From assembly GCF_003918875.1 (NCBI RefSeq), contig NW_025765914.1, positions 310,001-374,000 on the forward strand: a DNA stretch of 64,000 nucleotides. The letters run 5' to 3'. Each line of letters opens with the position of its first letter. Within the stretch, counting starts at the first letter, position 1. The notes under the pieces were generated by a model, which was not told where the DNA came from, did not search any database, and worked only from the letters and a program-made list of their open reading frames with translations. This stretch comes from Haliotis rubra (lineage: Eukaryota). The position numbers were made by a program, and so were the translations under genes. Positions 1 through 34,000 of the stretch are shown in pieces.

Positions 1-367
1 CCGATAAAGGTAGAAATTTGTAGGTCTGTCCTTGGTCAAGAAGCTTCTTGAATGTCGACTGTTGGGTGTACCTGCTCCAACAGTCCTTGACAAACCCAGC
101 CGTGAGGACAACGATTGTGTAGTCCGACCCCTCCACCACCCGGAACAACTCGTTGAAAACATTTCTACCTGGCAAACAGTCCCGGTCGTGGAAGTAACAG
201 TTCACATAGCCTAGCGACTCTAAGGTCGCCACGACCTTCTCAGTAAACGCAAGGGACAGTTTCGTGTCGGGGGTGACTGACAGACGACATCGGGCGTGGT
301 TGTAGATGACATTGAAGTGGTAGATCTTCCCATCAGGCAGAGGACAGCGACTCAAGGCCTCCGCCAT
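1..367 (-). CDS. TIR-domain protein paralogue A, first coding exon (runs off the window edge)
   Basis: Manual translation from the ATG at 367: MAEALSRCPLPDGKIYHFNVIYNH...YFHDRDCLPGRNVFNELFRVVEGSDYTIVVLTAGFVKDCWSRYTQQSTFKKLLDQGQTYKFLPLS. It has the TIR BB-loop (DRDCLPG) and the betaC strand (IVVLT). 42/61 residues are identical to the TIR at 10758-11306 over DRDCLPG..LPL. Not in the ORF track because there is no stop inside the window. Confidence 0.88.
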   Translation of the reverse strand, partial: MAEALSRCPLPDGKIYHFNVIYNHARCRLSVTPDTKLSLAFTEKVVATLESLGYVNCYFHDRDCLPGRNVFNELFRVVEGSDYTIVVLTAGFVKDCWSRYTQQSTFKKLLDQGQTYKFLPLS

Positions 368-3829: not shown

Positions 3830-4565
3830 AATACAACCTCAAAATGTATCGCCTGTCTGGGTCATACAACTACTCAGGTGTTTGGTTCAGACCTGATGTC
3901 AACATGCCTCCATACAACTACTCGCCTGACCTGGATCATACAACTACTCTCAGTTGTCTGGACTTCAGACCTGCCTGATGTCAACTCAGCTATCTCGCCA
4001 ACATATCTCTGCCTGCCCGGATCATACAAATACTCAGTTGTCTGGTTCAGACCTGACTGATGTCAACATATCTCGCCTGCCCGGACCATACAACTACTCC
4101 AGTTGGGTCTGGTGATCATCAAATATCCTGATCTGATGTTGTCAACCTGACTGATCTCAACCTGCCCGGATCATACAAATACTCAGCTGTCTGGTTCAGA
4201 CCTGACTGATGTCAACATATCTCGCCTGCCCGGAACATTCACAACTACTCAGTTGTCTGGGTCGAACCTGCCTGCCCGGAACATACAACTACTCAGTTGT
4301 CTGGTTCAGACCTGACTGATGTCAACATATCTCGCCTGCCCGGATCATACAACTACTCAGTTGTCTGGTTCAGACCTGACTGATGTCAACATATCTCGCC
4401 TGCCTGGACCATACAACTACTCAGTTGTCTGGTTCAGACCTGACTGAATCATACAAACACTCAGTGGTGTGGTTCGGACACGACTGATGTCGGCATATTT
4501 TGCCTACCTGGGTGACACAACCGCTGACTTGTCTGGTTCAAACCTGACATATCTGGCATATCTCG
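3830..4565 (+). repeat. 64-bp minisatellite (CATACAACTACTCAGTTGTCTGGTTCAGACCTGACTGATGTCAACATATCTCGCCTGCCCGGAT)
   Basis: Units start at 4282, 4346 and 4410; the 5' copies are degenerate. It lies in the probable 3' UTR of the TIR gene (AATAAA on the minus strand at about 3672-3677). Confidence 0.9.
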
Positions 4566-4859: not shown

Positions 4860-7800
4860 TTACTTCCTCACAGGAAACCTACTCAACGAGTCAGCCATGA
4901 AGAGGTTTTCTGCCATGCTGAAGAATAATCCCACCAAAAGCCGTGTTCCACGCGAATCTGTGAAAAGGCACACGAAAAGATGTTGTAAATACAACATAGA
5001 GGTGGTGACTATACATATGCATATATAATTCGGTTCAACGTGAGTTTGAATGAATGACAGATTGATTGATTGATTCAATTTGATTGTAGACTAAAGCCAC
5101 AAACAGGTTGTAAATAAGCAGATCTGTACAAGACAAACCAGATGATGAAAGCATAAGCAACAAATACAGGACTTGACCACCATCCATTTACAGTCAATAC
5201 ACATTGCTAGGTTCACAACAGAGTTTATATACAGTACACACACCTCCAAAAGTTATCGTTTACCGACACAACATATCTCGCCTGCCTGGACCAGACAGGC
5301 ACTCAGTTGCCTAGTCAGACCTGACTGATGTCAACATGTCTCGCCTGCCTGGATCAGACAGGCACTCAGTTGCCTGGTCAGATCTGACTGATGTCAACAT
5401 ATCTCGCCTGCCTGGATCAGACAGGCACTCAGTTGCCTAGTCAGACCTGACCGATGTCAACATGTACACACCTCCAATAGTTATCGTTTGCTGACCATCT
5501 TTATGATACTGCAGGAAGTTATTGACTTGAGACACTGTATATGAGGGCATCTCAGTATGGCATATCAAGGGTATTCGTGTGTATGTGCGTTGTGTACATG
5601 CGTGTTTGTGTGTATGTGTGTACGTGCGCACGTGGATGCCTGCGTGTAACTACAGAATATGACACATCTATGTTGAATTGCGTTGTTCAGACGACAAGTT
5701 GGACTAGAACAGACTAGTGAGTGAGTTAAAAGATAGAGAAAGAACATGTTTACTATTCACTATGAATTTGGAACGCACCTTGAGCTTCATATTCTCCACC
5801 ATGGGTCAGACTCGTCTCTGGATGTGCCTCGTCTGTTTCTCTCCCTGCAACGCCATCTTGAACCCGATCCTCTCCATCAGGGACGAGGCTTGTTCCTTGA
5901 AGTGGCTTTTCTGTTTCTCTCCCTGTAACGCCATCTTTGAACCTGATGTTCATCGTCATAGGATCAGGATTGTTCTTTGGAACAGTCTGATCTGTTTCTG
6001 CCCCCTAACACCGCCATCTTGAACCTGATCCTCTCCATCATGGACGGGGCTTGTTTCTTGAAGTGGCATTCCTCTATTCCTCTCCCTGTAACGCCATCTT
6101 GAACCTGATCCTCTCCATCATAGACGGGGCTTGTTCCTTGAAGTGGCTCTTCTGTTTCTCTCCCTGTAACGCCATCTTGAACCTGATCCTCTCCATCATA
6201 GACGGGGCTTGTTCCTTGAAGTGGCTCTTCTGTTTCTCTCCTGTACCGCCATCTTGAACCTGATCCTCTCCATCATAGACGGGGCTTGTTCCTTGAAGGG
6301 CTCTTCTGTTTCTCTCCCTGTAACGCCATCTTGAACCTGATCCTCTCCATCATAGACGGGGCTTGTTCCTTGGAGAGTGGCTCTTCTGTTTCTCTCCTGT
6401 AACGCCATCTTGAACCTGATCCTCTCCATCATAGACGGGGCTTGTTCCTTGAAGTGGCTCTTCTGTTTCTCTCCCTGTACCGCCATCTTGAACCTGATCC
6501 TCTCCATCATAGACGGGGCTTGTTCCTTGAAGTGGCTCTTCTGTTTCTCTCCCTGTAACGCCATCTTGAACCTGATCCTCTCCATCATAGACGGGGCTTG
6601 TTCCTTGAAGTGGCTCTTCTGTTTCTCTCCTGTAACGCCATCTTGAACCTGATCCTCTCCATCAGGGACGAGGCTTGTTCCTTGAAGTGGCTCTTCTGTT
6701 TCTCTCCCTGTACCGCCATCTAGACCTTGAACCTGATGTTCATCATAATCAGTCAGGGGGCATCCGTGAGTAGATGATCGTCTCTCCATCTGCTGAAGAA
6801 CCTCCTTGAGACAGCCGGTTAACCATGACATCTAGTGTTAAATGTAAAGAAGAGTGACTGGAGTGAGTGAGTGGGTTAAACTTTACGCCGCACTCAGCAA
6901 TATTCCAGCTATATGGAGGTGGTCTGTAAATAATCGAGTCTGGACCAGACAATCCAGTGATCAACAACATGAGCATCGTTCTGCACAATCGGGAACCGAT
7001 GACATGTGAACCAAGTCAGCGAGCCTGACCACCCGATCCCGTTAGTTGCCTCTTACGACAAGCATGGGTTACTGAAGATCAATATTCTAACCCGGACCTG
7101 CAGGGTCAAATGTAAAGAAGAGGCATTTGCATCTTTGGCGTTTTGTAACCCTATATTACAAGATGTAGGAACATGCCTGCAGGAAGTTATTGACTTGAGA
7201 CACTGTATATGAGGGCATCTCTCTAGTATGGCATATCAATGAGTATTCGTGTGTATGTGCGTTGTGTACGTGCGTGTTTGTGTGTAATGTGTGTGTACGT
7301 GCGCATGTGGATGCCTGCGTGTAACTACAGAATATGACACATCTATGTTGAATTGCGTTGTTCAGACGACAAGTTTGACGAGAACAGACTAGTGTAGTGA
7401 GTTAAAAGATAGATAAAGACAAATTCATTATGAATTTGGAACGCACCTGAGCTTCATATTCTCTACCATGGACCAGGTTCGTCTCTGGATGTGCCTCAAA
7501 TCTGTTTCTCTCCCTGTAACGCCATCTTGAACCTGATCCTCTCCATCATCAGGGACGGGCTTGTTCCTTGAAGTGGCTCTTCCTGTTTCTCTCCCTGTAA
7601 GCCATCTTGAGACCTGATCCTCTCCATCATAGACGGGGCTTGTTCCTTGAAGTGGCTCTTCTTCTGTTTCCTGTACCGCCATCTTAGACCTGATCCTCCA
7701 TCATGAGACGGGGCTTGTTCCCTTGAAGTGGGCTCTTCTGTTTCTCTCCTGTACCGCCATCTTGAACCTCGATCCTCTCTCCATCTTAGACGGGGCTTGT

Positions 7801-10800
7801 TGTTCCTTGAAGTGGCTCTTCTGTTTCTTCCCTGTAACCTGCATCTTGAACCCTGATCCTCTCCATCATCATAGACGGGGCTTGTTCCTTGAAGTGGCTC
7901 TTCTGTTTCTCTCCCTGTACTCGCCATCTTGGGCCTGATCCTCTCCATCATAGACAGGGCTTTGTTCGCGTGGCTCTTCTGTTTCTCTCCACCAACGCCA
8001 TCTTGAACCTGATCCCCTCTCCATCATGGAGCGGGGCTTGTTCTGGCAGAAGTAGCTCTTCTGATACCTCTCCCTGTAACGCCATCGCAGACCTGATCCT
8101 CTCCATCATGGGCAGGGCTTGTTCCTTTGAAGTAGAAATGCTTCTGTTCTCTTTCCCTGTACCGCCATCTTGAACCTGATCCTCTCCATCATAGACAGGG
8201 CTTGTTCCTTGAAGTGCTCTTCTGTTTCTCTCCCTGTAACGCCATCTTGAACCTGATCCTCTCCATCATAGACGGGGGCTTGTTCCTTGAAGTGGCTCTT
8301 CTGTTTCTCTCCCTAACGCCATCTTGAACCCTGATCCTCTCCATCAGGGACGAGGCTTGTTCCTTGAAGTGGCTCTTCTGTTTCTCTCCCTGTACCGCCA
8401 TCTAGACCTTGAACCTGATGTTCATAATCAGTCAGGGCATCCGTGAGTAGATGATCGTCTCTCCATCTGCTGAAGAACCTCCTTGAGGACAGCCGGTTAA
8501 CCATGACATCTGAGTGTTAAATGTAAAGAAGTGACTGAGTGAGTGAGTGGGTTAAGCTTTACGCCGCACTCAGCAATATTCCAGCTTATATGGAGGTGGT
8601 CTGTAAATAATCGAGTCTGGACCAGACAATCCAGTGATCAACAACATGAGGCATCGTTCTGCACAATCGGGAACCGATGACATGTGAACCAAGTCAGCGA
8701 GCCTGACCACCCGATCCCGTTAGTTGCCTCTTACGACAAGCATGGGTTACTGAAGATCAATATTCTAACCCGGACCTGCACGGGTCAAATGTAAAGAAGA
8801 GGCATTTGCATCTTTGGCGTTTGTAACCTATATTACAAGATGTAGGAACATGCCTGCAGGAAGTTATTGACTTGAGACACTGTATATGAGGGCATCTCTC
8901 GGTATGGCATATCAATGGTATTCGTGTGTATGTGCGTTGTGTACGTGCGTGTTTGTGTGTATGTGTGTACGTGCGCATGTGGATGCCTGCGTGTAACTAC
9001 AGAATATGACACATCTATGTTGAATTGCGTTGTTCAGACGACAAGTTTGACGAGAACAGACTAGTGAGTGAGTTAAAAGATAGATAAAGACAAATTCATT
9101 ATGAATTTGGAACGCACCTTATGAGCTTCATATTCTCCACCATGGACCAGGTTCGTCTCTGGATGTGCCTCGTCTGTTTCTCTCCCTGTAACGCCATCTT
9201 GATCCCGATCCTCTCCATCAGGGACGAGGCTTGTTCCTTGAAGTGGCTCTTCTGTTTCTCTCCCTGTAACGCCATCTTGAACCTGATCCTCTCCATCATA
9301 GACGGGGCTTGTTCCTTGAAGTGGCTCTTCTGTTTCTCTCCCCTGTACCGCCATCTAGACCTTGAACTTGATGTTCATCGTCACGGATCAGGATTGTCTT
9401 TGGAACTGTCTGATCTGTTTCTGCCGACGTAACACAATCTTGAACCTGATCCTCTCCATCATGGACGAGGCTTGTTTCTTGAAGCATCTCCTCTATTCCT
9501 CTCCTGTAACGACACCTTGACCTTGAACCCGACGTTCATAATCAGTCAGGGGCATGTATTAAAACGCGTTACATCTGAGAAGCGCTAGGAATAGATTTGC
9601 ACCAGAGAATACTCAACATCTGGGCGAAAAGGCAAAAGAGTGGGTACAGAATATTGGTATCAACTGCCCCTAGGCTAATTGCCCCTCGGACAAGGTGATC
9701 CCCATGGAGTGGATTCCAAGTCAGAGAGGGAATGAAAAGTTAGCTTTAGAGGGATTCTTGTATGTCCACCAGAAAGAGTTACAAGGTGGAGTTAACTCTT
9801 ATGAATGTGTGAAGAGGAGACAGTCAGTGTAAGAAGCAGAAGTGGCTAAAGTGAGAAATGCCATTAAATGTAACTTTCTCAAAAATGAGGTCTAAGTGAA
9901 TTTTCATGATTTATATGTTGTGTTGTATAACTTAGTGCTGTAAATTAAAAATTTAAAACTATTACTTTCAGTTTGTGTGTTTTTTGTTTTGATAGGGGGC
10001 AGTTGTCCGGGGGGCAATAAACCCAGGAGGCAGTTGTGTGTGTGTGTGGGCGCAATGGACGGGGGCAGATATCCAGGGGCAGTTGTCGGGGGCAGTTGTC
10101 CGGGGGGCAGTTAGCCTAGACCCAGAATATTACATGAATGGATCGCCGAACATTAGCGATGATAACAGGTGCTCGTGAAAGGGGTAAACATTCCCTGCTC
10201 TAGCGGGAGCACCCACCCAAGAAACATGGTGTTCATTGCCTATCGTATTTAAGAATGACATCAACGAAGAAAAGGCACACTCACCTTCATCCTGTGGGAT
10301 GATCGGATTATGTACAGAGGCTGGGGGATCATTGTCTTCAGCTTGCTGGCCTCCATTTTGGTTGGTTTCTGAATCGCAGTAACAAGATTCAATGAAACCC
10401 GTTGGTTCAGACGATTCTGGATTTAGTGATGTTGTTATTTAGTTGAAGAATCGGTTTCTGGAATATTGAATTGTAGTGTGCCCCTGAGCACAGCGCCATC
10501 CAGAGTAAGGTTTAGAGTTCGGTGATGTAGATTATAGAAATTGGCGAAAGCCTGGATATCAAAGGGAGGCAACTCATGAAAGGTTCGCGTTGTAGTTTCG
10601 CTTTAGCAATGGCAGTTACATTGAGACAACATACGCATGTCAGTCATTTTTATGTAACTCTGGAAAGTATTTCATTGTGGGAGAATGGTAAAAACCTAAG
10701 ACATGTGAATATTTTCTGAAAACTAAAGTCGAAATTGAGACCAAAGTTTGAACTCACCTTCCACAGGGTATTTCCTTGATTCGTTGCATGCATGCTGACG

Positions 10801-11306
10801 TTAGCTATTGGTCTGTGTTTAGTGAACACTCTTCTCAACTTTTGCCATGATGCCTCGTCATTCTCCCAGTCATCAGAAAACTCCAGAGGTGCTTGTGTGG
10901 TCAGCTCTACAGGCACTCGTAAATTCTGGTTCAGTCCGAAACATAACGGAAGTAACCGATGAGAAATGCCCCTCTCCAGAAGCTCCTTAAATGTGGCCTG
11001 TTGTGTATATCGATTCCAACTATCCAGTATAAACCCTGGGGTAAGGACGACGATGATGTACTCGGACGCTTCAACCACCCGGAATAGTTCCTGGAATACA
11101 TTCAAACCCGGCAAGCAATCCCGGTCATAATAGTACGAAGCACGGAGCCCGATAGATGCCAGTGTAGTTGTGATCTTTTTAACAACTTTTAAAGACTTTT
11201 CAATGTCATCTGGGGGATCGGAATCGTAATTGTATAAGATACAAAAATGATATTCTTTCCCGGGCGACACAGGGATACTTTCAACCGCGTCCCCTCCCGT
11301 CGCCAT
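4860..11306 (-). CDS. TIR-domain protein paralogue B with a long acidic 26-aa tandem-repeat linker and short hydrophobic C-terminal tail (spliced model)
   Basis: Exon 1 11306-10758 encodes the TIR (MATGGDAV...YDRDCLPGLNVFQELFRVVEASEYIIVVLTPGFILDSWNRYTQQ...TLWK, donor GTGAGT). Exon 2 10551-10285 (AFANF...ETDSST/TTSLNPESS...PQDE) has one apparent 1-nt loss near 10437. Repeat exons are 9574-9118, 8509-7447 and 6831-5779. The terminal exon is 4957-4860 (DSRGTRLLVGLFFSMAENLFMADSLSRFPVRK*). The TIR exon is secure; the downstream exons are inferred from splice signals and phase and contain scattered indels. Confidence 0.7.
5270..5465 (+). repeat. 63-bp minisatellite, 3 copies, related to the 64-bp array
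   Basis: TCGCCTGCCTGGA at 5278, 5341 and 5404; shares the GACCTGACTGATGTCAACAT core with the 64-bp array. Confidence 0.85.
6855..7107 (-). mobile_element. SINE family A copy with 15-bp TSD (AAATGTAAAGAAGAG)
   Basis: Matches about 12 other copies in the window. TSD at 6840-6854 and 7108-7122; (ACTC)n tail. Confidence 0.85.
8531..8786 (-). mobile_element. SINE family A copy (duplicated together with the module)
   Basis: Near-identical to 6855-7107 including the flanks. Confidence 0.85.
9656..10122. mobile_element. Non-autonomous DNA transposon with 9-bp TSD and GGGGCAGTTGTCC subterminal repeats
   Basis: CAGAATATT at 9647-9655 and 10123-10131; GGT...ACC ends; inverted AACTGCCCC / GGGGCAGTT motifs at both ends. 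Confidence 0.65.
10758..11306 (-). CDS. TIR domain exon of paralogue B
   Basis: Part of ORF 10650..11363. ATG in the context AATATGGCG; TIR boxes YHFCILYN, DRDCLPG, IIVVLTPGF, LLPL; donor AAG|GTGAGT at 10758/10757. Confidence 0.92.
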
Positions 11307-25008: not shown

Positions 25009-28000
25009 CACAAAGTGTTATTTTATGCGTAACCAATTTTATATTCTATAATAATGCCGTTACACAGTCTGCAGATTTCTGTTGCAGAATGCCCATGGAA
25101 TCGCACAGCTGCCAGGAACATCCAACAATTGCTACTATCGCAAATAAATACGGAAAATCAGCCGCACAGGTAGGTTTCTGCCCTGTTATTTTCTGTACAG
25201 GGGCGGTTGCATAAGGTGTTCAACCCCCTGCAGACATCCCTCCCACAGTCTGTGATAGATGTTGTTACTAACTATGCACTACTGATCATAATGTTTCCCT
25301 TGATAGATTTTGTTTCAACTAACTATGCACTACTGATCATAATGTTTCCCTTGATAGATTTTGTTACTAACTATGCACTACTGATCATAATGTTTCCCTT
25401 GATAGATTTTGTTTCAACTATGTACTATTGGTCCCACTGTTTCTACCCGTTAAGATCCGGGTTAGAATTGGTCTTCAGTAACCCATGCTTGGCAGAAAGT
25501 AAGAGAATCTCACGAAATACGGCACGTCGTTTGTCAACGTTAGGCGACTTTGGCTCGAACTTTTACCATTACTTGGAGACCCGTTACAATGCGGATTAGA
25601 ATTGGTCTTCAACAACCCATGCTTGTTGTAAGAGGTGACTAACGGGATCGGGTGGCCAGGCTCGCTGACTTGATTGACACATGTCATTGTATCCCAATTA
25701 CGTAGATCGAGGCTCGTGATGTTGATCCCTGGATTGTCTGGTGCGGACTCGATTATTTATAGACCGCCTACACATGCAAATTTCACGTCATACAGCCATC
25801 ATCTTTCAAGAGCGATTACTGTACAAACAACCATGGTTATGTGGAAGTGCAAGCAGTGATGCACTCTCAAAACATTCATTATTATCATATCAACATTGAT
25901 TGACTCCCATACATCTCCCAATATTTTCAATCGCAAATTACAAATGAAGTTCCCCTATATTCTAAAGAGGATATTTTGTCGTTTGCGGTGGACTACTGAA
26001 CTAAACGTTTTCTGTACACCAGGTGATCCTCAGGTGGGGCATACAGAGAGGCTATGCTGTGGTTCCCAAGGCAACGAATCCATTTTGTCTGGTCCAGAGC
26101 ATGGACGTGAGTGTCTGTGTTGGTATCTTCAATTTATCTGACCTCAGTTCCACGTGTATCAATGTGTCAGGAAAATGTAACGCTGGTGTTTTTCAATTGG
26201 CATTTGGCATTTGTGTTCATACCTTACGGTGTGCTGTTCAGTCATTTGTCAGGTTTAGAGGCTTTCTATAGGGGTACAATCCAGCTCCCTCTATAGTGAA
26301 TTATATATATACACACATACATACATGCATACACATATACTAGCCACATAAATAAACTGTGCATTGTCAAAATATTATCCCAGTTGATAAGTACGATAAC
26401 AATGTCAAAGGTACATATAAACTTTAATGGAGGGATCATGAGACCATAACAAGTCGGGAGAATTTCAATTGAAAAGTCAATCACAATGACGTCACGAGTC
26501 CACAAGCGGGACAGGAGTCAAACGACCATGTCACAAGCTCAATAACGGGTATGTCCACCATCGGCATTGAGAACAGCAGTGCATCGACGACGCATAGAGC
26601 CTATCAAACGTGCAAGGAAGGCTTGTGGGATGTCACGCCAGATTCTCTCAAGTTCTGTTGCAAGGTCAAGGACGTTATCTGGCGGATGAGGAAGACGGCG
26701 TAGACGTCGATCCATCTCGTCCCAAACATGCTCTATCGGGGAGAGATCCGGTGAATTTGCAGGCCAAGGCAGTAAGTCAACGTTGTGGAGTTGCAAGAAA
26801 TCCATAGCAACCCTTGCCGTATGAGGGCGGGCATTGTCCTGTTAGAATGTTAACCCAGGGCCATGACGTTGCAGAAAAGGAACTGGCACAGGTCGAAGAA
26901 TCTAATCCCTGTAGCCCACACCAGTTAAGTTGCCCTGAACAATCACCAAAAGAGTTCTTTGGCGTGCTGTTATTCCACCCCAAATCATCACGGAACCACC
27001 ACCAAAGCGTTTCCTCTCCAAGACACAGGCCTGTGCATAACGTTCTCTCACGCGCCTATAGGCACGTTGACGTCCATCACTATGGGAAATGTTAAACCTG
27101 GACTCATCTGTAAAAACAACATTTCTCCACCAAAACAAGGGTCTGCGGACATGATTTCGGCACCACATTCGGCGAGCTTGTCGATGACGTTGTGTCAGGA
27201 TAGGCCGTATGGCGGGACGTCGTGGTCTGATCCCGTGATGACGTAAACGTTGTCGAACTGTGTTGGGGTGGACACGGCGAAGTCCTGGGATGGTTCGGGC
27301 AGTCATCACTGCAGTCTGAAACCTGTGGCGAAGATGGGTCACCCTTATCCATATGTCCTGTCTTGGCGTTGTTACACGTGGACGTCCAGAACGTGGCCGA
27401 TCGATGACGTCATGTGTGTTCTGGTAGCATCTCACCAGTACAGAAATGGTGTTCCGGTGGCAGTGGAAATGTACAGCCACTTGTCGTTGAGACATATACC
27501 CACGGACCATCCCAATGGCCTCAAGACGTTGTGCAGACGTGAGCCTTGGCATGCTATGCGTTTCAATAGCCGTTTAATTTTTTGAACGATCGCAAGGGCA
27601 GGGATTGAGCTTTCCAAAGTGGCAGTATTATGTGGCATTCGTTTGCTCTGTTTCTCTTTCGTTGAATGCACGTGCAACAACGTAGTGCACGTCTCAAGGA
27701 CGAACCCACTGACGTCACGGAACGTGGCACGTGCATGCATGTTGGATACATGTCACTAATCTCTGAGTTTGAATCCTTATGTGTCTACACAGGTTTGATA
27801 AATTTAGATTTTACAATTTTTGTATGCACATTTTCTTTATGTGCCTAGTATAGTTGGGGAGGAGTTTTGGCAAATGATCTTCAATACAATTTGCTCTTTT
27901 GTCTTGTACCATATGTTTCCTTGTTTCATCAGGTGAACAATTACCTTCCTTTCACATGTGTTTGTGGTGGGGAGTGGGGACCACCGGTGGGCAAGATACG

Positions 28001-28394: not shown

Positions 28395-31005
28395 ACACAC
28401 GGTCGACATGTTCAGAGTTTCATCATTATGTGCATGATTTAAGAGTTAAGGATCATCGGATTGTTAACCTGTCTTTGGTTTGGTTTGTTGTTTTATGGAG
28501 CACTCAGCAATCGCGACGGTCTGTAAATAAGCGAGTCTTGACCAGACAATCCAGTGATCAACAGCATGAGCATCGATCTACGCAATCGGGAACGATGACA
28601 TGTGTCAACCAAGTCAGCGAGCCTGACCACCCGATCCCGTTAGTCTCCTCTTACAAGCATAGGTTGCTGAAGACCAATTCTAATCCGGATCTTCACGGGT
28701 CCTTCTTAGGTAGTACAAGAATAGGAATGTTTCGTACTAAAAGTGGCTGTCGTGTTTCATCTTTAAGTACAAACCAATTCTGTTACCTACGTGGAAGTGG
28801 ATATTGCCCTGAGCGCCGCCAATATCAGTTCGTTTGACATTATGGCTGTTTTCTGAATACTTAACACATAACACAGTATGCTTTCATTTGAAAACAAACA
28901 GATAAAACAATTCTAATTTGATATCTAGTGTCTGAAGGTTGTGTTTTGTCAAGGGATATTCATGCGCAAAAGAAATAGTCCCAGGCCGGGGAAACACTCG
29001 ACAACAAGAGAACACGGAAACAATTCGAACAGTCATATCTACTGCCGCTAGCAGATTTGAGCAGATCGTGGTCCTACTAAACTGAGACAAGTCATGCATC
29101 GACATATTTGTCCATATTTCCTTCAGAAAGAAGGCTTAACCTATTCATCCTTTTATGAAGTCCGGTTCGGTGGGGTAGTCTAGTGGTTAAAGCCTTTGCT
29201 AGTCGCCGAAGACCCGAGTTCTATTCTCCGTGTTCTATTCTCATGTGTTCTATTCTCCACATGGGTACAATGTGAGAAGCCCATTTCTGGTGTCCCCCGC
29301 CTTGATATTGCTAAAAGCGATACAATGCTATTGCTACATCGCAAACCAAACTCACTCACTCATTTTAAGTCAACATGTACGAGATAAACAGTCACCAAAT
29401 CTCAGAGTCAGATTAATGTGAACAGTGTTTTGGTTTCCAATCGTGTACTCGACGTTTGACGCACCGATCTCATTGACAAAAGAATCACTGATGACGTGCA
29501 GTGAAACACCCTGGTGTCGAAGTTGACGGGACCTACGTAAATACTTCAACTTATCCGAGCTTCGACAGAACGCAAAATGATGAATAAAGAAGGAATACGG
29601 AGGCACCAAGCTTTCACATGAAAATGATTTCGAGTCGATTGTGTTTGACTGTTCAGTGTTTAGCAACATATACGCATTTGAGCTATATGGATTGCGGGAA
29701 ACAAAGCGCCCCTGTGATCTTTCTGTAATGAGCTAACAGACATCTACATCGCAGAACGTTTTATTCGCTCTTTCTTGGTTTACATGACTAACACCTACCT
29801 TTCAGGCTGTCTTCTCCCATATAAGAGAATGAGTGGTATGTGTTTTGTTAGTTTGTTTGTTGTTTAACGCAACACTTCAGCTGTCTGTAAACAAACCAGT
29901 GATCAACAGAATGAGCACCGATCTACGCAATTGGGATACGATGACATGTGTCAACCAAGTCAGCGAATCTGACCACCCGATCCCGTTAGTCGCCTCTTAC
30001 GACAAGCATGGGTTACTAAGACTAATTCTAACCGGTATCTTCACGGGTAACTAACACAAGTTTCCTGAATCTACTTTCACTTCGGAATTTTACATTACTA
30101 ACAATACAGACTATGTATTATGTGAAACAAAACCCTGTAATACTTAGACTGACTGTACATTTTGACGGAACGTTCTAATACGTGACTACTGGTATCTGTC
30201 TATACCATGATAATCCAGGTAGAATTAGTCCTAAATTAGCAAATTTTTCATAAATGCCACGTTTTAACATGTGAGCATTGTTAAGTGAGGTTTCCTAATT
30301 AAATATGTCCGGACTGTGGAGGTTCGACTGTTTGCAGTGACAAATAATAGCGACAAACCCCGTTCCATACACATAAGAAATCTCTGCTTAAAGGACTTCA
30401 AAATCGATTGTACAATTCCCACTATATTGTTGGCTTGAGTATTTGCTTGTTTGTTAAAGCCGCACTGTCATGAAGGCTTGTCTAGCGAACCCTTGTGTTA
30501 TCACTGATTTCCCGTGATCCGTTTTATCAGCTGATCGAGGCTGATGGTCTTAGTGTTGGCGATTTGACTTCACAACTTCCAAGAACAACCGACTCTCTTG
30601 TTGTCCTCGAGATATGCAAACAGCGACTGGGGCCATGCAACCCCCTCGTGTTGGTGGGGATCAAGGCATGCCCGTCTGTCAACATGGGCTGGGATGGGAC
30701 GTGAGTCTCACACATTGTCCACGGCCACTCGAACATCTGAAACATGGTCCAACTGACAGAACTAACAGTGGAAGCCTACTGCGTCTTAACACAGAACAGA
30801 CTTCACTGACAATGGGGGCGTTAGGCAGACAATGTTTTGCCTGTCACAGCCTTGATCTTGTTCAAGACAAATGCAGGTTTTGAATATTGCTGACTCGAAC
30901 ACACGTCCCTGACCCGGTGTTGCAGACACTCAAGACAGGAGCCGGGTTTGGCCACGGGACTACATCGTCGATTGCAGTCCGGATTAGTTTTATCCTCCTC
31001 CGAAA

Positions 31006-34000
31006 ATGAATGCTCGTTTCACAAAGACATGGTTAAAAGCAGTTCTATTTCACACGCTTATCGGAATATGGCTGTTTCCCGTGAAAGGTAAGTTGTCTCT
31101 CTTTTAGGAAATATTTCCGCAATACCACATCTGGGGACGCAAGAAATGGACTTCACCCATTGTACCCGTGGAGGGAAACAAACCCGAACCTACGGTGTGA
31201 CGAGCGAACGCTTCAACAACTTGTCTACCGCCGTACCTATTGACATGGAGCTATGATAGTTATGAGTACCATTATTGTTTTATATGGCCTGCCATGATAA
31301 ATACCGATGTGTTAATAGAGACACCACACAATCACACTTTGAAAACAGGACGAAAGTCCGCAGTATTTAAATTACCGTAGAAGTGAAAAAGGAGAAAACA
31401 CATGCATAGGTACGACCTCATCAATGTTAGGTGCAGCTGTTCTCAATGACAGTTATTTTTTGAAATATTTAACAAATTTTGACATTAGTTAATGAAGGAT
31501 ATTAAAGGCTCACTATAACGCTGACATTAATAATCGGCGTCAAGTGTTTGATCAAATTCCATCCAAAGGCAGTTTGAGTGATCACTTAAGACACAGAAGA
31601 TGACGATTATCACATGCATGTATAGAAAAATCCTTTTGTCATATAGAGAATTTAGAACCAATGTTTAGGCAGATTGTTTCTGTTCAGAGTCAAACTGTTT
31701 TGACAAATAGTGCCTAACCCCCAAGAGCTATTCCATCACCTAGGGATAACATTTCAACGAAAACCGAGAGAAAATGCTTTTTCTGTCTTCTGTAAAGATG
31801 AAACATTTATGTATATTTGTGTTTTATGTATAAAAGTACTTTTTCGGAAGTATAAAGAAACGCTCGTAAAATATATCTTATCAGGAAGTATATGCTGAAG
31901 GTGGCGTAAGCATCTCTGTCTTATGCTTAGTGTATGACCAAATGGTTAGACAACTACTGGTTTCCATTGCCGTTACGTGTTACGAATAACACTCATGTCT
32001 TCTCTTCAACTTTAGGACTTTGGAGTTCAAACTTAATCTTTCTAAGTAAAGCTTAAAACAGGGGTGATATCTCAAAAGGATACATTAAGTCGATGATCTA
32101 GATTACCAGTTGTCCAACTTCCACTTTTGTGAAAGACTAACTTCGTGCTAGCAATTAGGTGCCTGGCTGAGAGTGTGGGTTCGAATCCCGGACGAGACTG
32201 AACCCAACAAAAGTACAGTATACTATAATCTGTAAATTACTGAGAAAGTGTAATCCCAAATACAACATGTGCACATTTTGTTGTGATCCATGAGTGAGTG
32301 ACTTATGTCGGATTCCTTGTCCGATACTTATACGGAAACACATACTTGGGATGCCATTAATCCAAGATTTATGGTTTGATCTTCAAGGATTTCACTTGTG
32401 GATTGAATGTTCACGATAATGATCGTGGACACGGACCACTGCCAGATGCCAGTCTGGATTAGGGACCACGTGGTAGCTGACCCGTGAAGATCCGGGTTAG
32501 AATTGGTCTTCAGCAACCCATGCTTGGTGTAAGAGGCGACTAAGAGGCGATCGATGCTCATGCTGTTGATCACTGAATTGTCTGGTCCAGACTATTTCCA
32601 GACTGCCCTCATGCAGCTTGCTTATATGCTGAGTGCGGCGTGAAACAAACAAACGACCAAACAAACACAACCTCGTGGTAGCCAGGCGCCGAAATATGCT
32701 GTGTAGAGTTACGTTCCCCACACCACCTCTGAGTCGTACTGTGCTCTGTGATACACTGCTGGAAGCACGTCTCCAAACACGGTTTACTGAAATGCAGACA
32801 AACTCGTCACTGAGGATGGTGAAACGCCATTGTGGCGGTGACTGCTGAACCTTTGACGACTTATTGACTCTACACTTCATGATGACCAATCGACGACGGT
32901 ATGAATACTTTAGCATTTAACAGGTCAATGACTTAATAGCCTTTCTGGTGACCTTGAACACTTTTGTTATAAAACAGCCAAGGCATGGCTTCACATCACA
33001 GTGCAAATCCCATAAACTTGGTGAGTGAGTGAGTTTAGTTTTACGCCGCACTCAGCAATATTCAAGCTATGTGGCGTCCTGTAAATAACCAAGTCTGGAC
33101 CAGACAATCCAGTGATCAACAACATGAGCATCGATCTACGCAATTGGGAACCGATGACATGTGTCAACCAAGTCAGCGAGTCTGACCACCCGATCCCGTT
33201 AGTCGCCTCTTACAAGCATGGGTTACTTAAGATCAATATTCTAACCCGGATCTTCACAGGTCATAAACTTGGTATCACACAAATTGTTTCGATGCGATCA
33301 CGGGGAACAAATATAGATCTCCAGCTTAACCACTGACTAATGCGTGACATTTGAGCGCTAACGTCATGTATTGAATCACCACGGTGACGTCTGTTGTTAC
33401 TACGCAACAATCCGACGAAAAAAGAATGACCCAAATCACTATAACGGGTTCCACGTGCATTGTTCTCGAGTTCTTTCACCCGCAAATTTCATTATCGTTT
33501 ATAGTCTGTTTGCAGTTAAAACGTACCAATGAATTTCACTTTAAACAAAAAAGTAAATCAAATAAAGTGAAATTAAGATTGCGAATCCTCATAATTTTAC
33601 CTTGCCAACTGAACATTTAAATCTCAAAAATTTATTCAAATTAGGATAAAAGTTGTTTAACAAATGATCATAGATTCAAATCGCTATTACTGGTTTTCAT
33701 TACAATGGGGTAAGCGCAATAGTTGGAACAGTGAAACAAATGCACGTGCGGTACGTGAAGAGCGTTAACTTATAACAACCCTTGTCTTTTTCTGTGTTTC
33801 ATTTGATGTGCATACCCCCTTGTAATACAAACCAATAATAGCCATGCGAGACTATGATCGTTTGTTAAACAACTTTTATCCTAAGTCGAATAAAATTCTG
33901 AGATTTTAATGTTCAATTGGCAAGGTAAAATCATGAGGATTCGCAGTCTTAATTTCACTTTATTTGCTTTACCTTTTGGTTTAAACTGACATTCATCGGT

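Follow-up and report, generated by a model that had tools for sequence, protein, structure and literature searches.

RefSeq LOC124274612, on the minus strand in the blacklip abalone Haliotis rubra, is a genuine gene for an orphan TIR adaptor, and part of its coding sequence is a tandem repeat specific to the lineage. It was analyzed here within a window of 64,000 nt (positions 310,001 to 374,000 of RefSeq contig NW_025765914.1), which corresponds to contig QXJH01000192.1 of assembly GCA_003918875.1. An earlier note, made from the sequence alone, had read the locus as a TIR exon followed by phase-compatible exons, a 78-bp repeat with some 20 PLQGT motifs of the TRAF-binding PxQxT type, and a short hydrophobic tail, i.e., as a multivalent scaffold resembling MAVS and TRIF. 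The best overall explanation, to which we assign a probability of about 60%, is an ancestral TIR adaptor with an acidic-unit exon that appears in three copies of exon 3, with about 23 units, in an error-rich assembly. Identity and ancestral architecture of the locus are firmer than this, and we regard both as very probably correct.

The TIR adaptor gene and its Haliotis orthologues

All coding parts of the gene lie on the minus strand. The open reading frame starting at 11306 carries a TIR domain (Pfam TIR_2, 35.2 bits at a curated cut-off of 28, E 2e-8), which bears out the TIR exon read earlier and places it at 11306..10758; the Pfam search found no domain besides TIR, and thus no N-terminal CARD. 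Exon 1 (10758..11306) comprises the start codon and the TIR domain in 549 nt, ends in phase 0, and its TIR is 76-80% identical to that of H. asinina protein P0001. Exon 2 (10285..10368, 84 nt) was placed by 79% identity to residues 184-211 of P0001, by DNA alignment, and by cover of RNA-like contigs. The last coding exon (4860..4957, phase 1) reads DSRGTRLLVGLFFSMAENLFMADSLSRFPVRK plus a stop codon, is 72% identical to the P0001 tail, and is likewise backed by tail alignments and RNA-like contig cover; the terminal RLLVGLFFSM... tail described earlier was found intact in it, at 4957..4860.

The contigs used for this comparison come from four public runs, DNA-type and RNA-like, of related organisms and were aligned to window positions 4870-10869. 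Among them are two small RNA-like runs from a related organism, with cover over 10670-10869, 10270-10469, 9070-9669, and 4870-5069. RNA-like cover falls on the end of exon 1, exon 2, the first copy of exon 3, the start of its second copy, and the last exon, and depth is almost nil (0.86 in one bin) in the intron bins 9670-10269 and 10470-10669.

With the TIR exon as query we recovered P0001 (308 aa), and with P0001 as query four more proteins, among them P0003, the public H. rubra protein of this locus. The orthologues are P0001 and P0002 (424 aa) of H. asinina, P0004 of H. cracherodii, and P0005 of H. rufescens; there are two tandem paralogues in H. asinina but a single protein in each of H. 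cracherodii and H. rufescens, and one TIR exon in H. rubra. For H. asinina, the assembly is HiFi-based and the gene models draw on Iso-Seq (PMC11393055). All four proteins follow a common plan of TIR domain, post-TIR motif, acidic linker, one unit exon, and a last exon with ...AENLF..DSLSR.P. The post-TIR motif (PVEET, SVEET, or PVQET) lies about 20 residues past the TIR domain, spans the junction of exons 1 and 2, and is in frame in 4/4 orthologues; their exons 2 and 3 are phase 1-1. H. rubra has the same exon plan, DNA for a motif of the P/S-V-[QE]-E-T form that as assembled is out of frame with the start codon, the acidic unit LQETS...HDGEDQ, the C-terminal motif, and a neighbouring large TIR gene; this neighbour is found on the downstream side in H. 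asinina, H. cracherodii, and H. rubra. Unlike H. rubra, with about 23 assembled units, the orthologues have intact frames and few units, namely one in P0001, three long units of 54 residues in P0002, and two degenerate units each in P0004 and P0005.

The TIR domain, the acidic linker with its unit, and the C-terminal tail of the earlier gene model are thus confirmed by four orthologues, while the assembled frame is broken; given the shared plan, that model describes the ancestral gene correctly, including the frame chosen. The orthologues use the acidic frame, and the basic alternative frame (GEKQKSHFKEQ...), open but used by none of them, was rejected. The picture for conservation of the repeat and its PxQxT motif is mixed: the acidic unit is present in one to three copies, but its motif reads P/T-LQET in H. 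asinina and RLQET, RLEES, or RLPEA in H. cracherodii and H. rufescens, where the proline is gone.

A phmmer search against 1.84 billion representative proteins returned a family of 109 matches (lengths 100-3727 residues), in which the TIR domain is nearly always N-terminal and 20 of the 20 named proteins are from molluscs, either gastropods or bivalves; 57 of the matches have E<=1e-10, nearly all of these with the TIR domain at residues ~5-170. Of 37 proteins, 19 have [PSAT]-x-[QE]-[ED]-[TS] in the 45 residues that follow the TIR domain, compared with 8.5% expected from the remainder of the same 37 proteins. This pattern takes forms such as PIQET, PVQET, PMQET, PVQDT, SVQES, and PVEET and is visible in the consensus of the family alignment, with flanks that are not conserved. 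Family middle regions consist of unrelated low-complexity sequence, often with tandem repeats of their own, and the last ~20 residues are again shared, typically as ...LLP.Y..ICHAIS[KR]PE.PYF, of which the Haliotis tail is a divergent form. Judged by its N-terminal TIR domain and C-terminal motif, LOC124274612 is the H. rubra member of this apparently mollusc-restricted family of putative cytosolic orphan TIR adaptors. The post-TIR Px(Q/E)ET and the C-terminal motif appear to be leads worth following, and stronger ones than the repeat.

The form ...[IL]-[ST]-[KR]-P-[ED]-x-P-[YF] ends P0024, P0035, P0045, P0052, P0054, P0058, P0061, and P0063, which are gastropod and bivalve proteins of 226-3299 residues. 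There is a loose likeness between this C-terminal motif and the x-I-S core of pLxIS in vertebrates, but no match.

The repeat may have no partner of its own. It could be a fast-evolving acidic spacer under weak constraint in which PLQ[EG]T is coincidental, a reading to which we give almost even odds. Linkers elsewhere in the family are unrelated low-complexity sequence or lineage-specific repeats (P0006, P0018, P0025), unit number varies as 1, 3, and 2 in close relatives, and the motif itself drifts through PLQET, TLQET, MLQET, PLQGT, RLQET, and RLEES. However, the core LQETS-L-x-HDG-E/D is kept in H. rubra, H. asinina, and the North-Pacific species, and the unit motif resembles the conserved post-TIR motif.

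Exon 3 and the 78-bp repeat arrays

Tandem Repeats Finder resolves the 78-bp repeat into three arrays, at 5824-6721 (11.4 copies, 3% indels), 7501-8403 (11.3 copies, 10% indels), and 9165-9356 (2.4 copies, 0% indels). Translation of the consensus in the acidic frame, GRETEEPLQGTSPVYDGEDQVQDGVT, agrees with the unit described earlier, i.e., 26 residues with seven D/E and one R. The 24-mer encoding EEPLQGTS has 15 gapless matches compared with none expected, and a fuzzy anchor search finds 23 repeat units. The roughly 20 PLQGT units read earlier are spread over three copies of exon 3 and lie in no single array or frame; the one PLQET expected near 6050-6066 is located at 6066..6052. Unit spacing varies from 75 to 83 nt instead of a constant 78 nt, and the acidic frame spans at most three units before a frameshift. 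The single protein with some 20 motifs is consequently not encoded by the assembled sequence.

Exon-3 copy 1 (9118..9555), delimited by translations and tblastn, lacks its first ~75 nt and a usable acceptor and holds one long MLQET unit, two clean PLQGT units, and a terminal unit with donor. Copy 2 (7447..8509, 1063 nt) has acceptor, donor, and about 11 units and is heavily corrupted. Copy 3 (5779..6831, 1053 nt), also with acceptor and donor, contains about nine PLQGT-type units, one long PLQET unit, and a terminal unit, and its first part is used by P0003. Copies 2 and 3 belong to a tandem duplication of ~1.68 kb with two full copies (5480..8855, minus strand), recognized by pairwise alignment and by an orthology map to the H. 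asinina introns. In each full copy, the end of intron 2 with a short interspersed nuclear element (SINE) is followed by exon 3 and by 330 nt from the start of intron 3; a third, truncated copy occupies 8856-9555. The pairwise alignment has 1550 matches, 53 mismatches, and 74 gap events.

Frame breaks in the arrays are probably for the most part unpolished Nanopore sequencing errors, because indels exceed substitutions, one C-run varies in length between copies, and one break is corrected by contigs of related runs. Relative to the unit consensus, the 876 nt of copy 2 carry 43 small indels as well as 30 substitutions and the core of copy 3 has seven indels and five substitutions, and the intron and SINE parts of the two copies differ almost only by 1-nt indels. 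The C-run before CTGACTGAT is four, three, and five nucleotides long in copies 1 (9550-9553), 2 (8441-8443), and 3 (6739-6743), respectively. Copy 1 gains a C after 9502 in the contigs of three out of four public runs, of which two are DNA-type and one is RNA-like, and with this base its acidic frame is restored; these correcting contigs of related runs cover 9243-9549. The published assembly used ~30x Nanopore reads, wtdbg and DBG2OLC, QuickMerge, and haplotig purging, was polished by two rounds of Racon and one of Pilon, and represents a genome with a heterozygosity of 1.3-1.4% (PMC6774278). We lean towards some unit expansion relative to H. asinina being real. Copy number and one long translated repeat protein are nevertheless unverified, given the many 1-nt indels of this stretch and a TIR start codon that is out of frame. 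The proposed hard-wired TRAF valency may thus be partly an assembly artefact, and the striking repeat valency possibly owes as much to assembly as to biology.

This concern extends to the triplication of exon 3 itself, which could be a false duplication in which the Nanopore, DBG2OLC, and QuickMerge procedure stitched two haplotypes or paralogues together, the true gene having one exon 3 with three to about 11 units. We consider this a serious possibility, although short of an even chance. Copies 2 and 3 have near-equal unit counts (11.3 and 11.4), the intron and SINE differences just described are mostly single-nucleotide, the published assembly kept haplotigs and merged two assemblies (PMC6774278), and H. 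asinina has two tandem paralogues here, where H. rubra has one TIR exon. A contig of a relative also bears on this point. The start of the exon is missing in copy 1, yet the match of one RNA-like contig ends at 9549, where the similarity of copy 1 to copies 2 and 3 ends, and continues for 262 more letters; such an extension would be expected if, in that organism, exons 1 and 2 were spliced to a complete exon 3. Another RNA-like contig (8374-8511) ends at the copy-2 acceptor with 26 further letters upstream. However, copies 2 and 3 differ in the unit content of their 3' parts, and the long PLQET unit is found only in copy 3. Long reads, moreover, usually span units of 1.7 kb, assemblers more often collapse than expand repeats, and real young duplicates would also escape short-read polishing.

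Several other repetitive elements occur in and around these introns. The SINE-like element of the duplicated intron (6861-7100, 8537-8790) is found again at about 28430-28840 and 32500-32920, has copies at the H. asinina and H. cracherodii loci, and is very abundant, with a summed contig depth of 10^6-10^7 in DNA-type runs compared with ~10^2 in flanking unique sequence. Intron 2 contains an insertion of ~450 bp resembling a miniature inverted-repeat transposable element (9670..10119), with 24-nt terminal inverted repeats that are 92% complementary and with raised DNA but no RNA depth; it lies directly upstream of the truncated exon-3 copy. A tandem repeat of 63-64 bp in the last intron (5269-5463) recurs downstream of the gene (3851-4548), and a related 64-bp array is present in the H. 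asinina paralogue at the equivalent place in the intron (L001 6334-6556).

The exon 1 frame, the public gene model, and neighbouring genes

Alignment of the exon ends shows a net deficit of 1 nt relative to H. asinina in the last ~30 nt of exon 1, which puts P-V-E-E-T and all downstream exons in another frame than that of the TIR start codon. DNA for P-V-E-E-T is present, formed by the last bases of exon 1 (CCTGTGGAAG) together with exon 2 (AAACC). As assembled, the exons are not phase-compatible as the earlier note had supposed, since exon 1 with its 549 nt ends in phase 0 and the downstream exons require phase 1.

The public protein P0003 (422 aa) is identical to the window translation and is placed on QXJH01000192.1. 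Its model leads from exon 1 into exon 2 in a shifted frame and on to the start of exon-3 copy 3, crosses from the acidic into the basic repeat frame, and meets a stop codon inside the array. Because of 1-nt indels the product (window 5779-11306) is stitched from three reading frames, and it omits two of the three exon-3 copies. The public protein of LOC124274612 is thus a case for caution, a frame-hopping product of Nanopore indels.

Several observations weigh against the overall explanation favoured here. The missing nucleotide at the end of exon 1 is seemingly shared by DNA contigs of two related organisms, which equal the window in length across 10773-10811, 1 nt below H. asinina, and show substitutions only in the displayed rows of the alignment, many rows being undisplayed. 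One of these DNA contigs, as reconstructed, has an in-frame TGA five codons before the donor. If the shift is real, linker, repeats, and tail are not translated from the TIR start codon in this lineage, and the exons downstream of exon 1 may truly be untranslated from it. Within the arrays, no DNA or RNA contig lies on 6270-6469 or 7470-8069, with traces elsewhere in 6070-6670 and 8070-8470, and the bulk of the arrays is consequently supported by nothing outside the assembly. Such contig gaps over tandem repeats are expected of de Bruijn contigs and prove nothing either way. A search with 81 residues of the repeat gave no match among proteins of 45-142 residues, the only lengths included, and says little. 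In some family members, finally, the Q/E position of the post-TIR motif is occupied by W or T.

These observations could be taken further, to a gene that is truncated or decaying in the H. rubra lineage, with a real 1-nt loss that uncouples the TIR domain while the remainder is transcribed and spliced but not translated and the repeat expands and drifts neutrally. The equal length of window and relatives at 10773-10811 and the TGA would fit this scenario, as would the exon-2 changes relative to H. asinina, which by our count are six non-synonymous to one synonymous. We nonetheless consider decay unlikely. Many indel rows are not displayed and three gap letters of the X4 piece are unplaced, reads bring copy 1 back into the acidic frame, the tail exon is intact, and the excess of indels over substitutions points to sequencing error.

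Two further features of the window lie apart from the gene. The first exon of the next TIR gene, the large downstream one, is found at window 364..5 on the minus strand and corresponds to H. rubra P0006/P0112 (774/789 aa); its TIR domain has 49% identity and is followed by PIQET, and the protein has repeats of its own of the QNIESQ type, the annotated model being without the family C-terminal motif. At 26902-27552, also on the minus strand, an open reading frame of 216 aa resembles by eye a fragment of a Tc1/mariner-type transposase.

Candidate TRAF motifs, the C-terminal tail, and known systems

Known TRAF1/2-binding motifs comprise a major class, Px(Q/E)E, and the minor classes Px(Q/E)xxD and PxQxT (PMC7215387). 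The assignment of PLQGT to TRAF-type motifs is sound in so far as it fits PxQxT, the minor class, and this class only; Px(Q/E)E is matched by PLQET (6066..6052) and by the junction motif PVEET. In the amplified unit of H. rubra the E of this major motif is lost, and a random 26-mer of the same composition holds P.Q.[TS] ~3% of the time. We consider binding of TRAF by any motif of the LOC124274612 protein rather improbable. As a hypothesis for the family, TRAF recruitment seems reasonable, more so via the post-TIR site than via the repeat. The D-G dipeptides of the unit had also been considered as caspase sites; to our knowledge, their P4-P1 residues, PVYD and QVQD, are no classic caspase sites.

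The C-terminal tail has a longest uncharged run of 10 residues and a best Kyte-Doolittle mean over 19 residues of 1.39 (0.95-1.65 in the orthologues). AlphaFold2 (AF2) models P0001 with a predicted local distance difference test score (pLDDT) above 90 in the TIR domain (residues 15-165) and below 55 from residue 170 to the end, and gives the tail of the short family member P0024 as a helix of 11 residues with a pLDDT of ~60. With at most 10 uncharged residues in a row the tail is no membrane anchor, being too polar and too short, and AF2 has it disordered or as a short helix. A MAVS-like anchoring by the tail is thus rejected on hydropathy, uncharged-run, and AF2 evidence alike. Foldseek with the P0001 model retrieved only TIR structures (C. 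gigas TIR-STING, TLR1, MAL, MyD88), each with probability 1.0. At the position of the SARM1-type Glu, four residues after the conserved Trp, the sequence by eye reads W-N-R-Y-T, i.e., a Thr, with Thr, Cys, or Lys in relatives; presumably, NADase activity is unlikely.

TIRAP/MAL and TRIF share with the H. rubra protein a TIR domain as scaffold and a disordered region with short motifs, and TIRAP is the best match by sequence among solved structures (E 2e-5). TIRAP/MAL and TRIF carry TRAF6-type motifs. The H. rubra protein differs from both in that its TIR domain is N-terminal, that it is without lipid-binding N-terminus, RHIM, and pLxIS, that its motifs are of the TRAF1/2/3 type, and that there is no orthology. 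With MAVS it shares the layout of N-terminal interaction domain, disordered region with TRAF-type motifs, and C-terminal hydrophobic element, but it has TIR in place of CARD, its C-terminal element is no transmembrane helix, and there is no sequence relationship. Assignment to the TRIF or MAVS family was rejected on these grounds. The sites of CD40, LMP1, and TANK offer a further likeness, as PVQET of H. rufescens is letter for letter the CD40 core and PVEET, PIQET, and PLQET fit the major motif; this likeness is a motif match alone, and the mollusc motifs occur in a TIR adaptor instead of a TNFR-type receptor. The protein also resembles orphan cytosolic TIR proteins, in which TIR is the sole recognized domain and a role as adaptor or regulator is presumed.

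The proposal of one translated protein with ~20 PLQGT motifs, acting as a high-avidity TRAF2/3 scaffold with a MAVS-like tail anchor and signalling tuned by a variable number tandem repeat, can draw on the fit of PLQGT to the minor PxQxT class (and of H. asinina PLQET to the major motif as well), on the phase 1-1 exon 3 of the orthologues, which would allow extra copies to be spliced without a change of frame, and on the related motif conserved after the TIR domain in the family, but is very improbable given a frame broken at exon 1 and some 50 times within the arrays, a tail that is no membrane anchor, H. cracherodii and H. rufescens units without proline, and a motif that lacks the E of Px(Q/E)E, arises by chance at the ~3% rate given above, and is one of many motif classes that might have been matched.

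For the ancestral adaptor, a simple mode of action can be imagined. Through TIR-TIR contacts, the TIR domain would dock on Toll-like or other TIR proteins once these are activated, and the disordered tail would then present short linear motifs to downstream partners, a TRAF MATH domain being the best guess for the partner of the conserved post-TIR motif. In its broadest form, mollusc TIR adaptors would couple TIR signalling directly to TRAF2/3-type proteins via the post-TIR P-[VI]-[QE]-E-T and a C-terminal docking motif, with a second copy of the former, inside the 26-residue unit, amplified in tandem in the H. rubra/H. asinina lineage and so varying the valency; this is speculative, and we think it rather improbable. 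Abalone genomes are reported to be without MAVS (PMC11103948). If true, the TRAF-recruiting adaptors TRIF and MAVS would have a protostome counterpart in this family, in animals for which MAVS is reported to be absent, and the motif valency of the family would be variable between species and perhaps between individuals. Abalone suffer viral and bacterial mass mortalities, and for the very large TIR repertoires of molluscs a family-wide TRAF-type motif at a conserved position beside an adaptor-type TIR domain would offer a directly testable TIR-TRAF link to downstream signalling.

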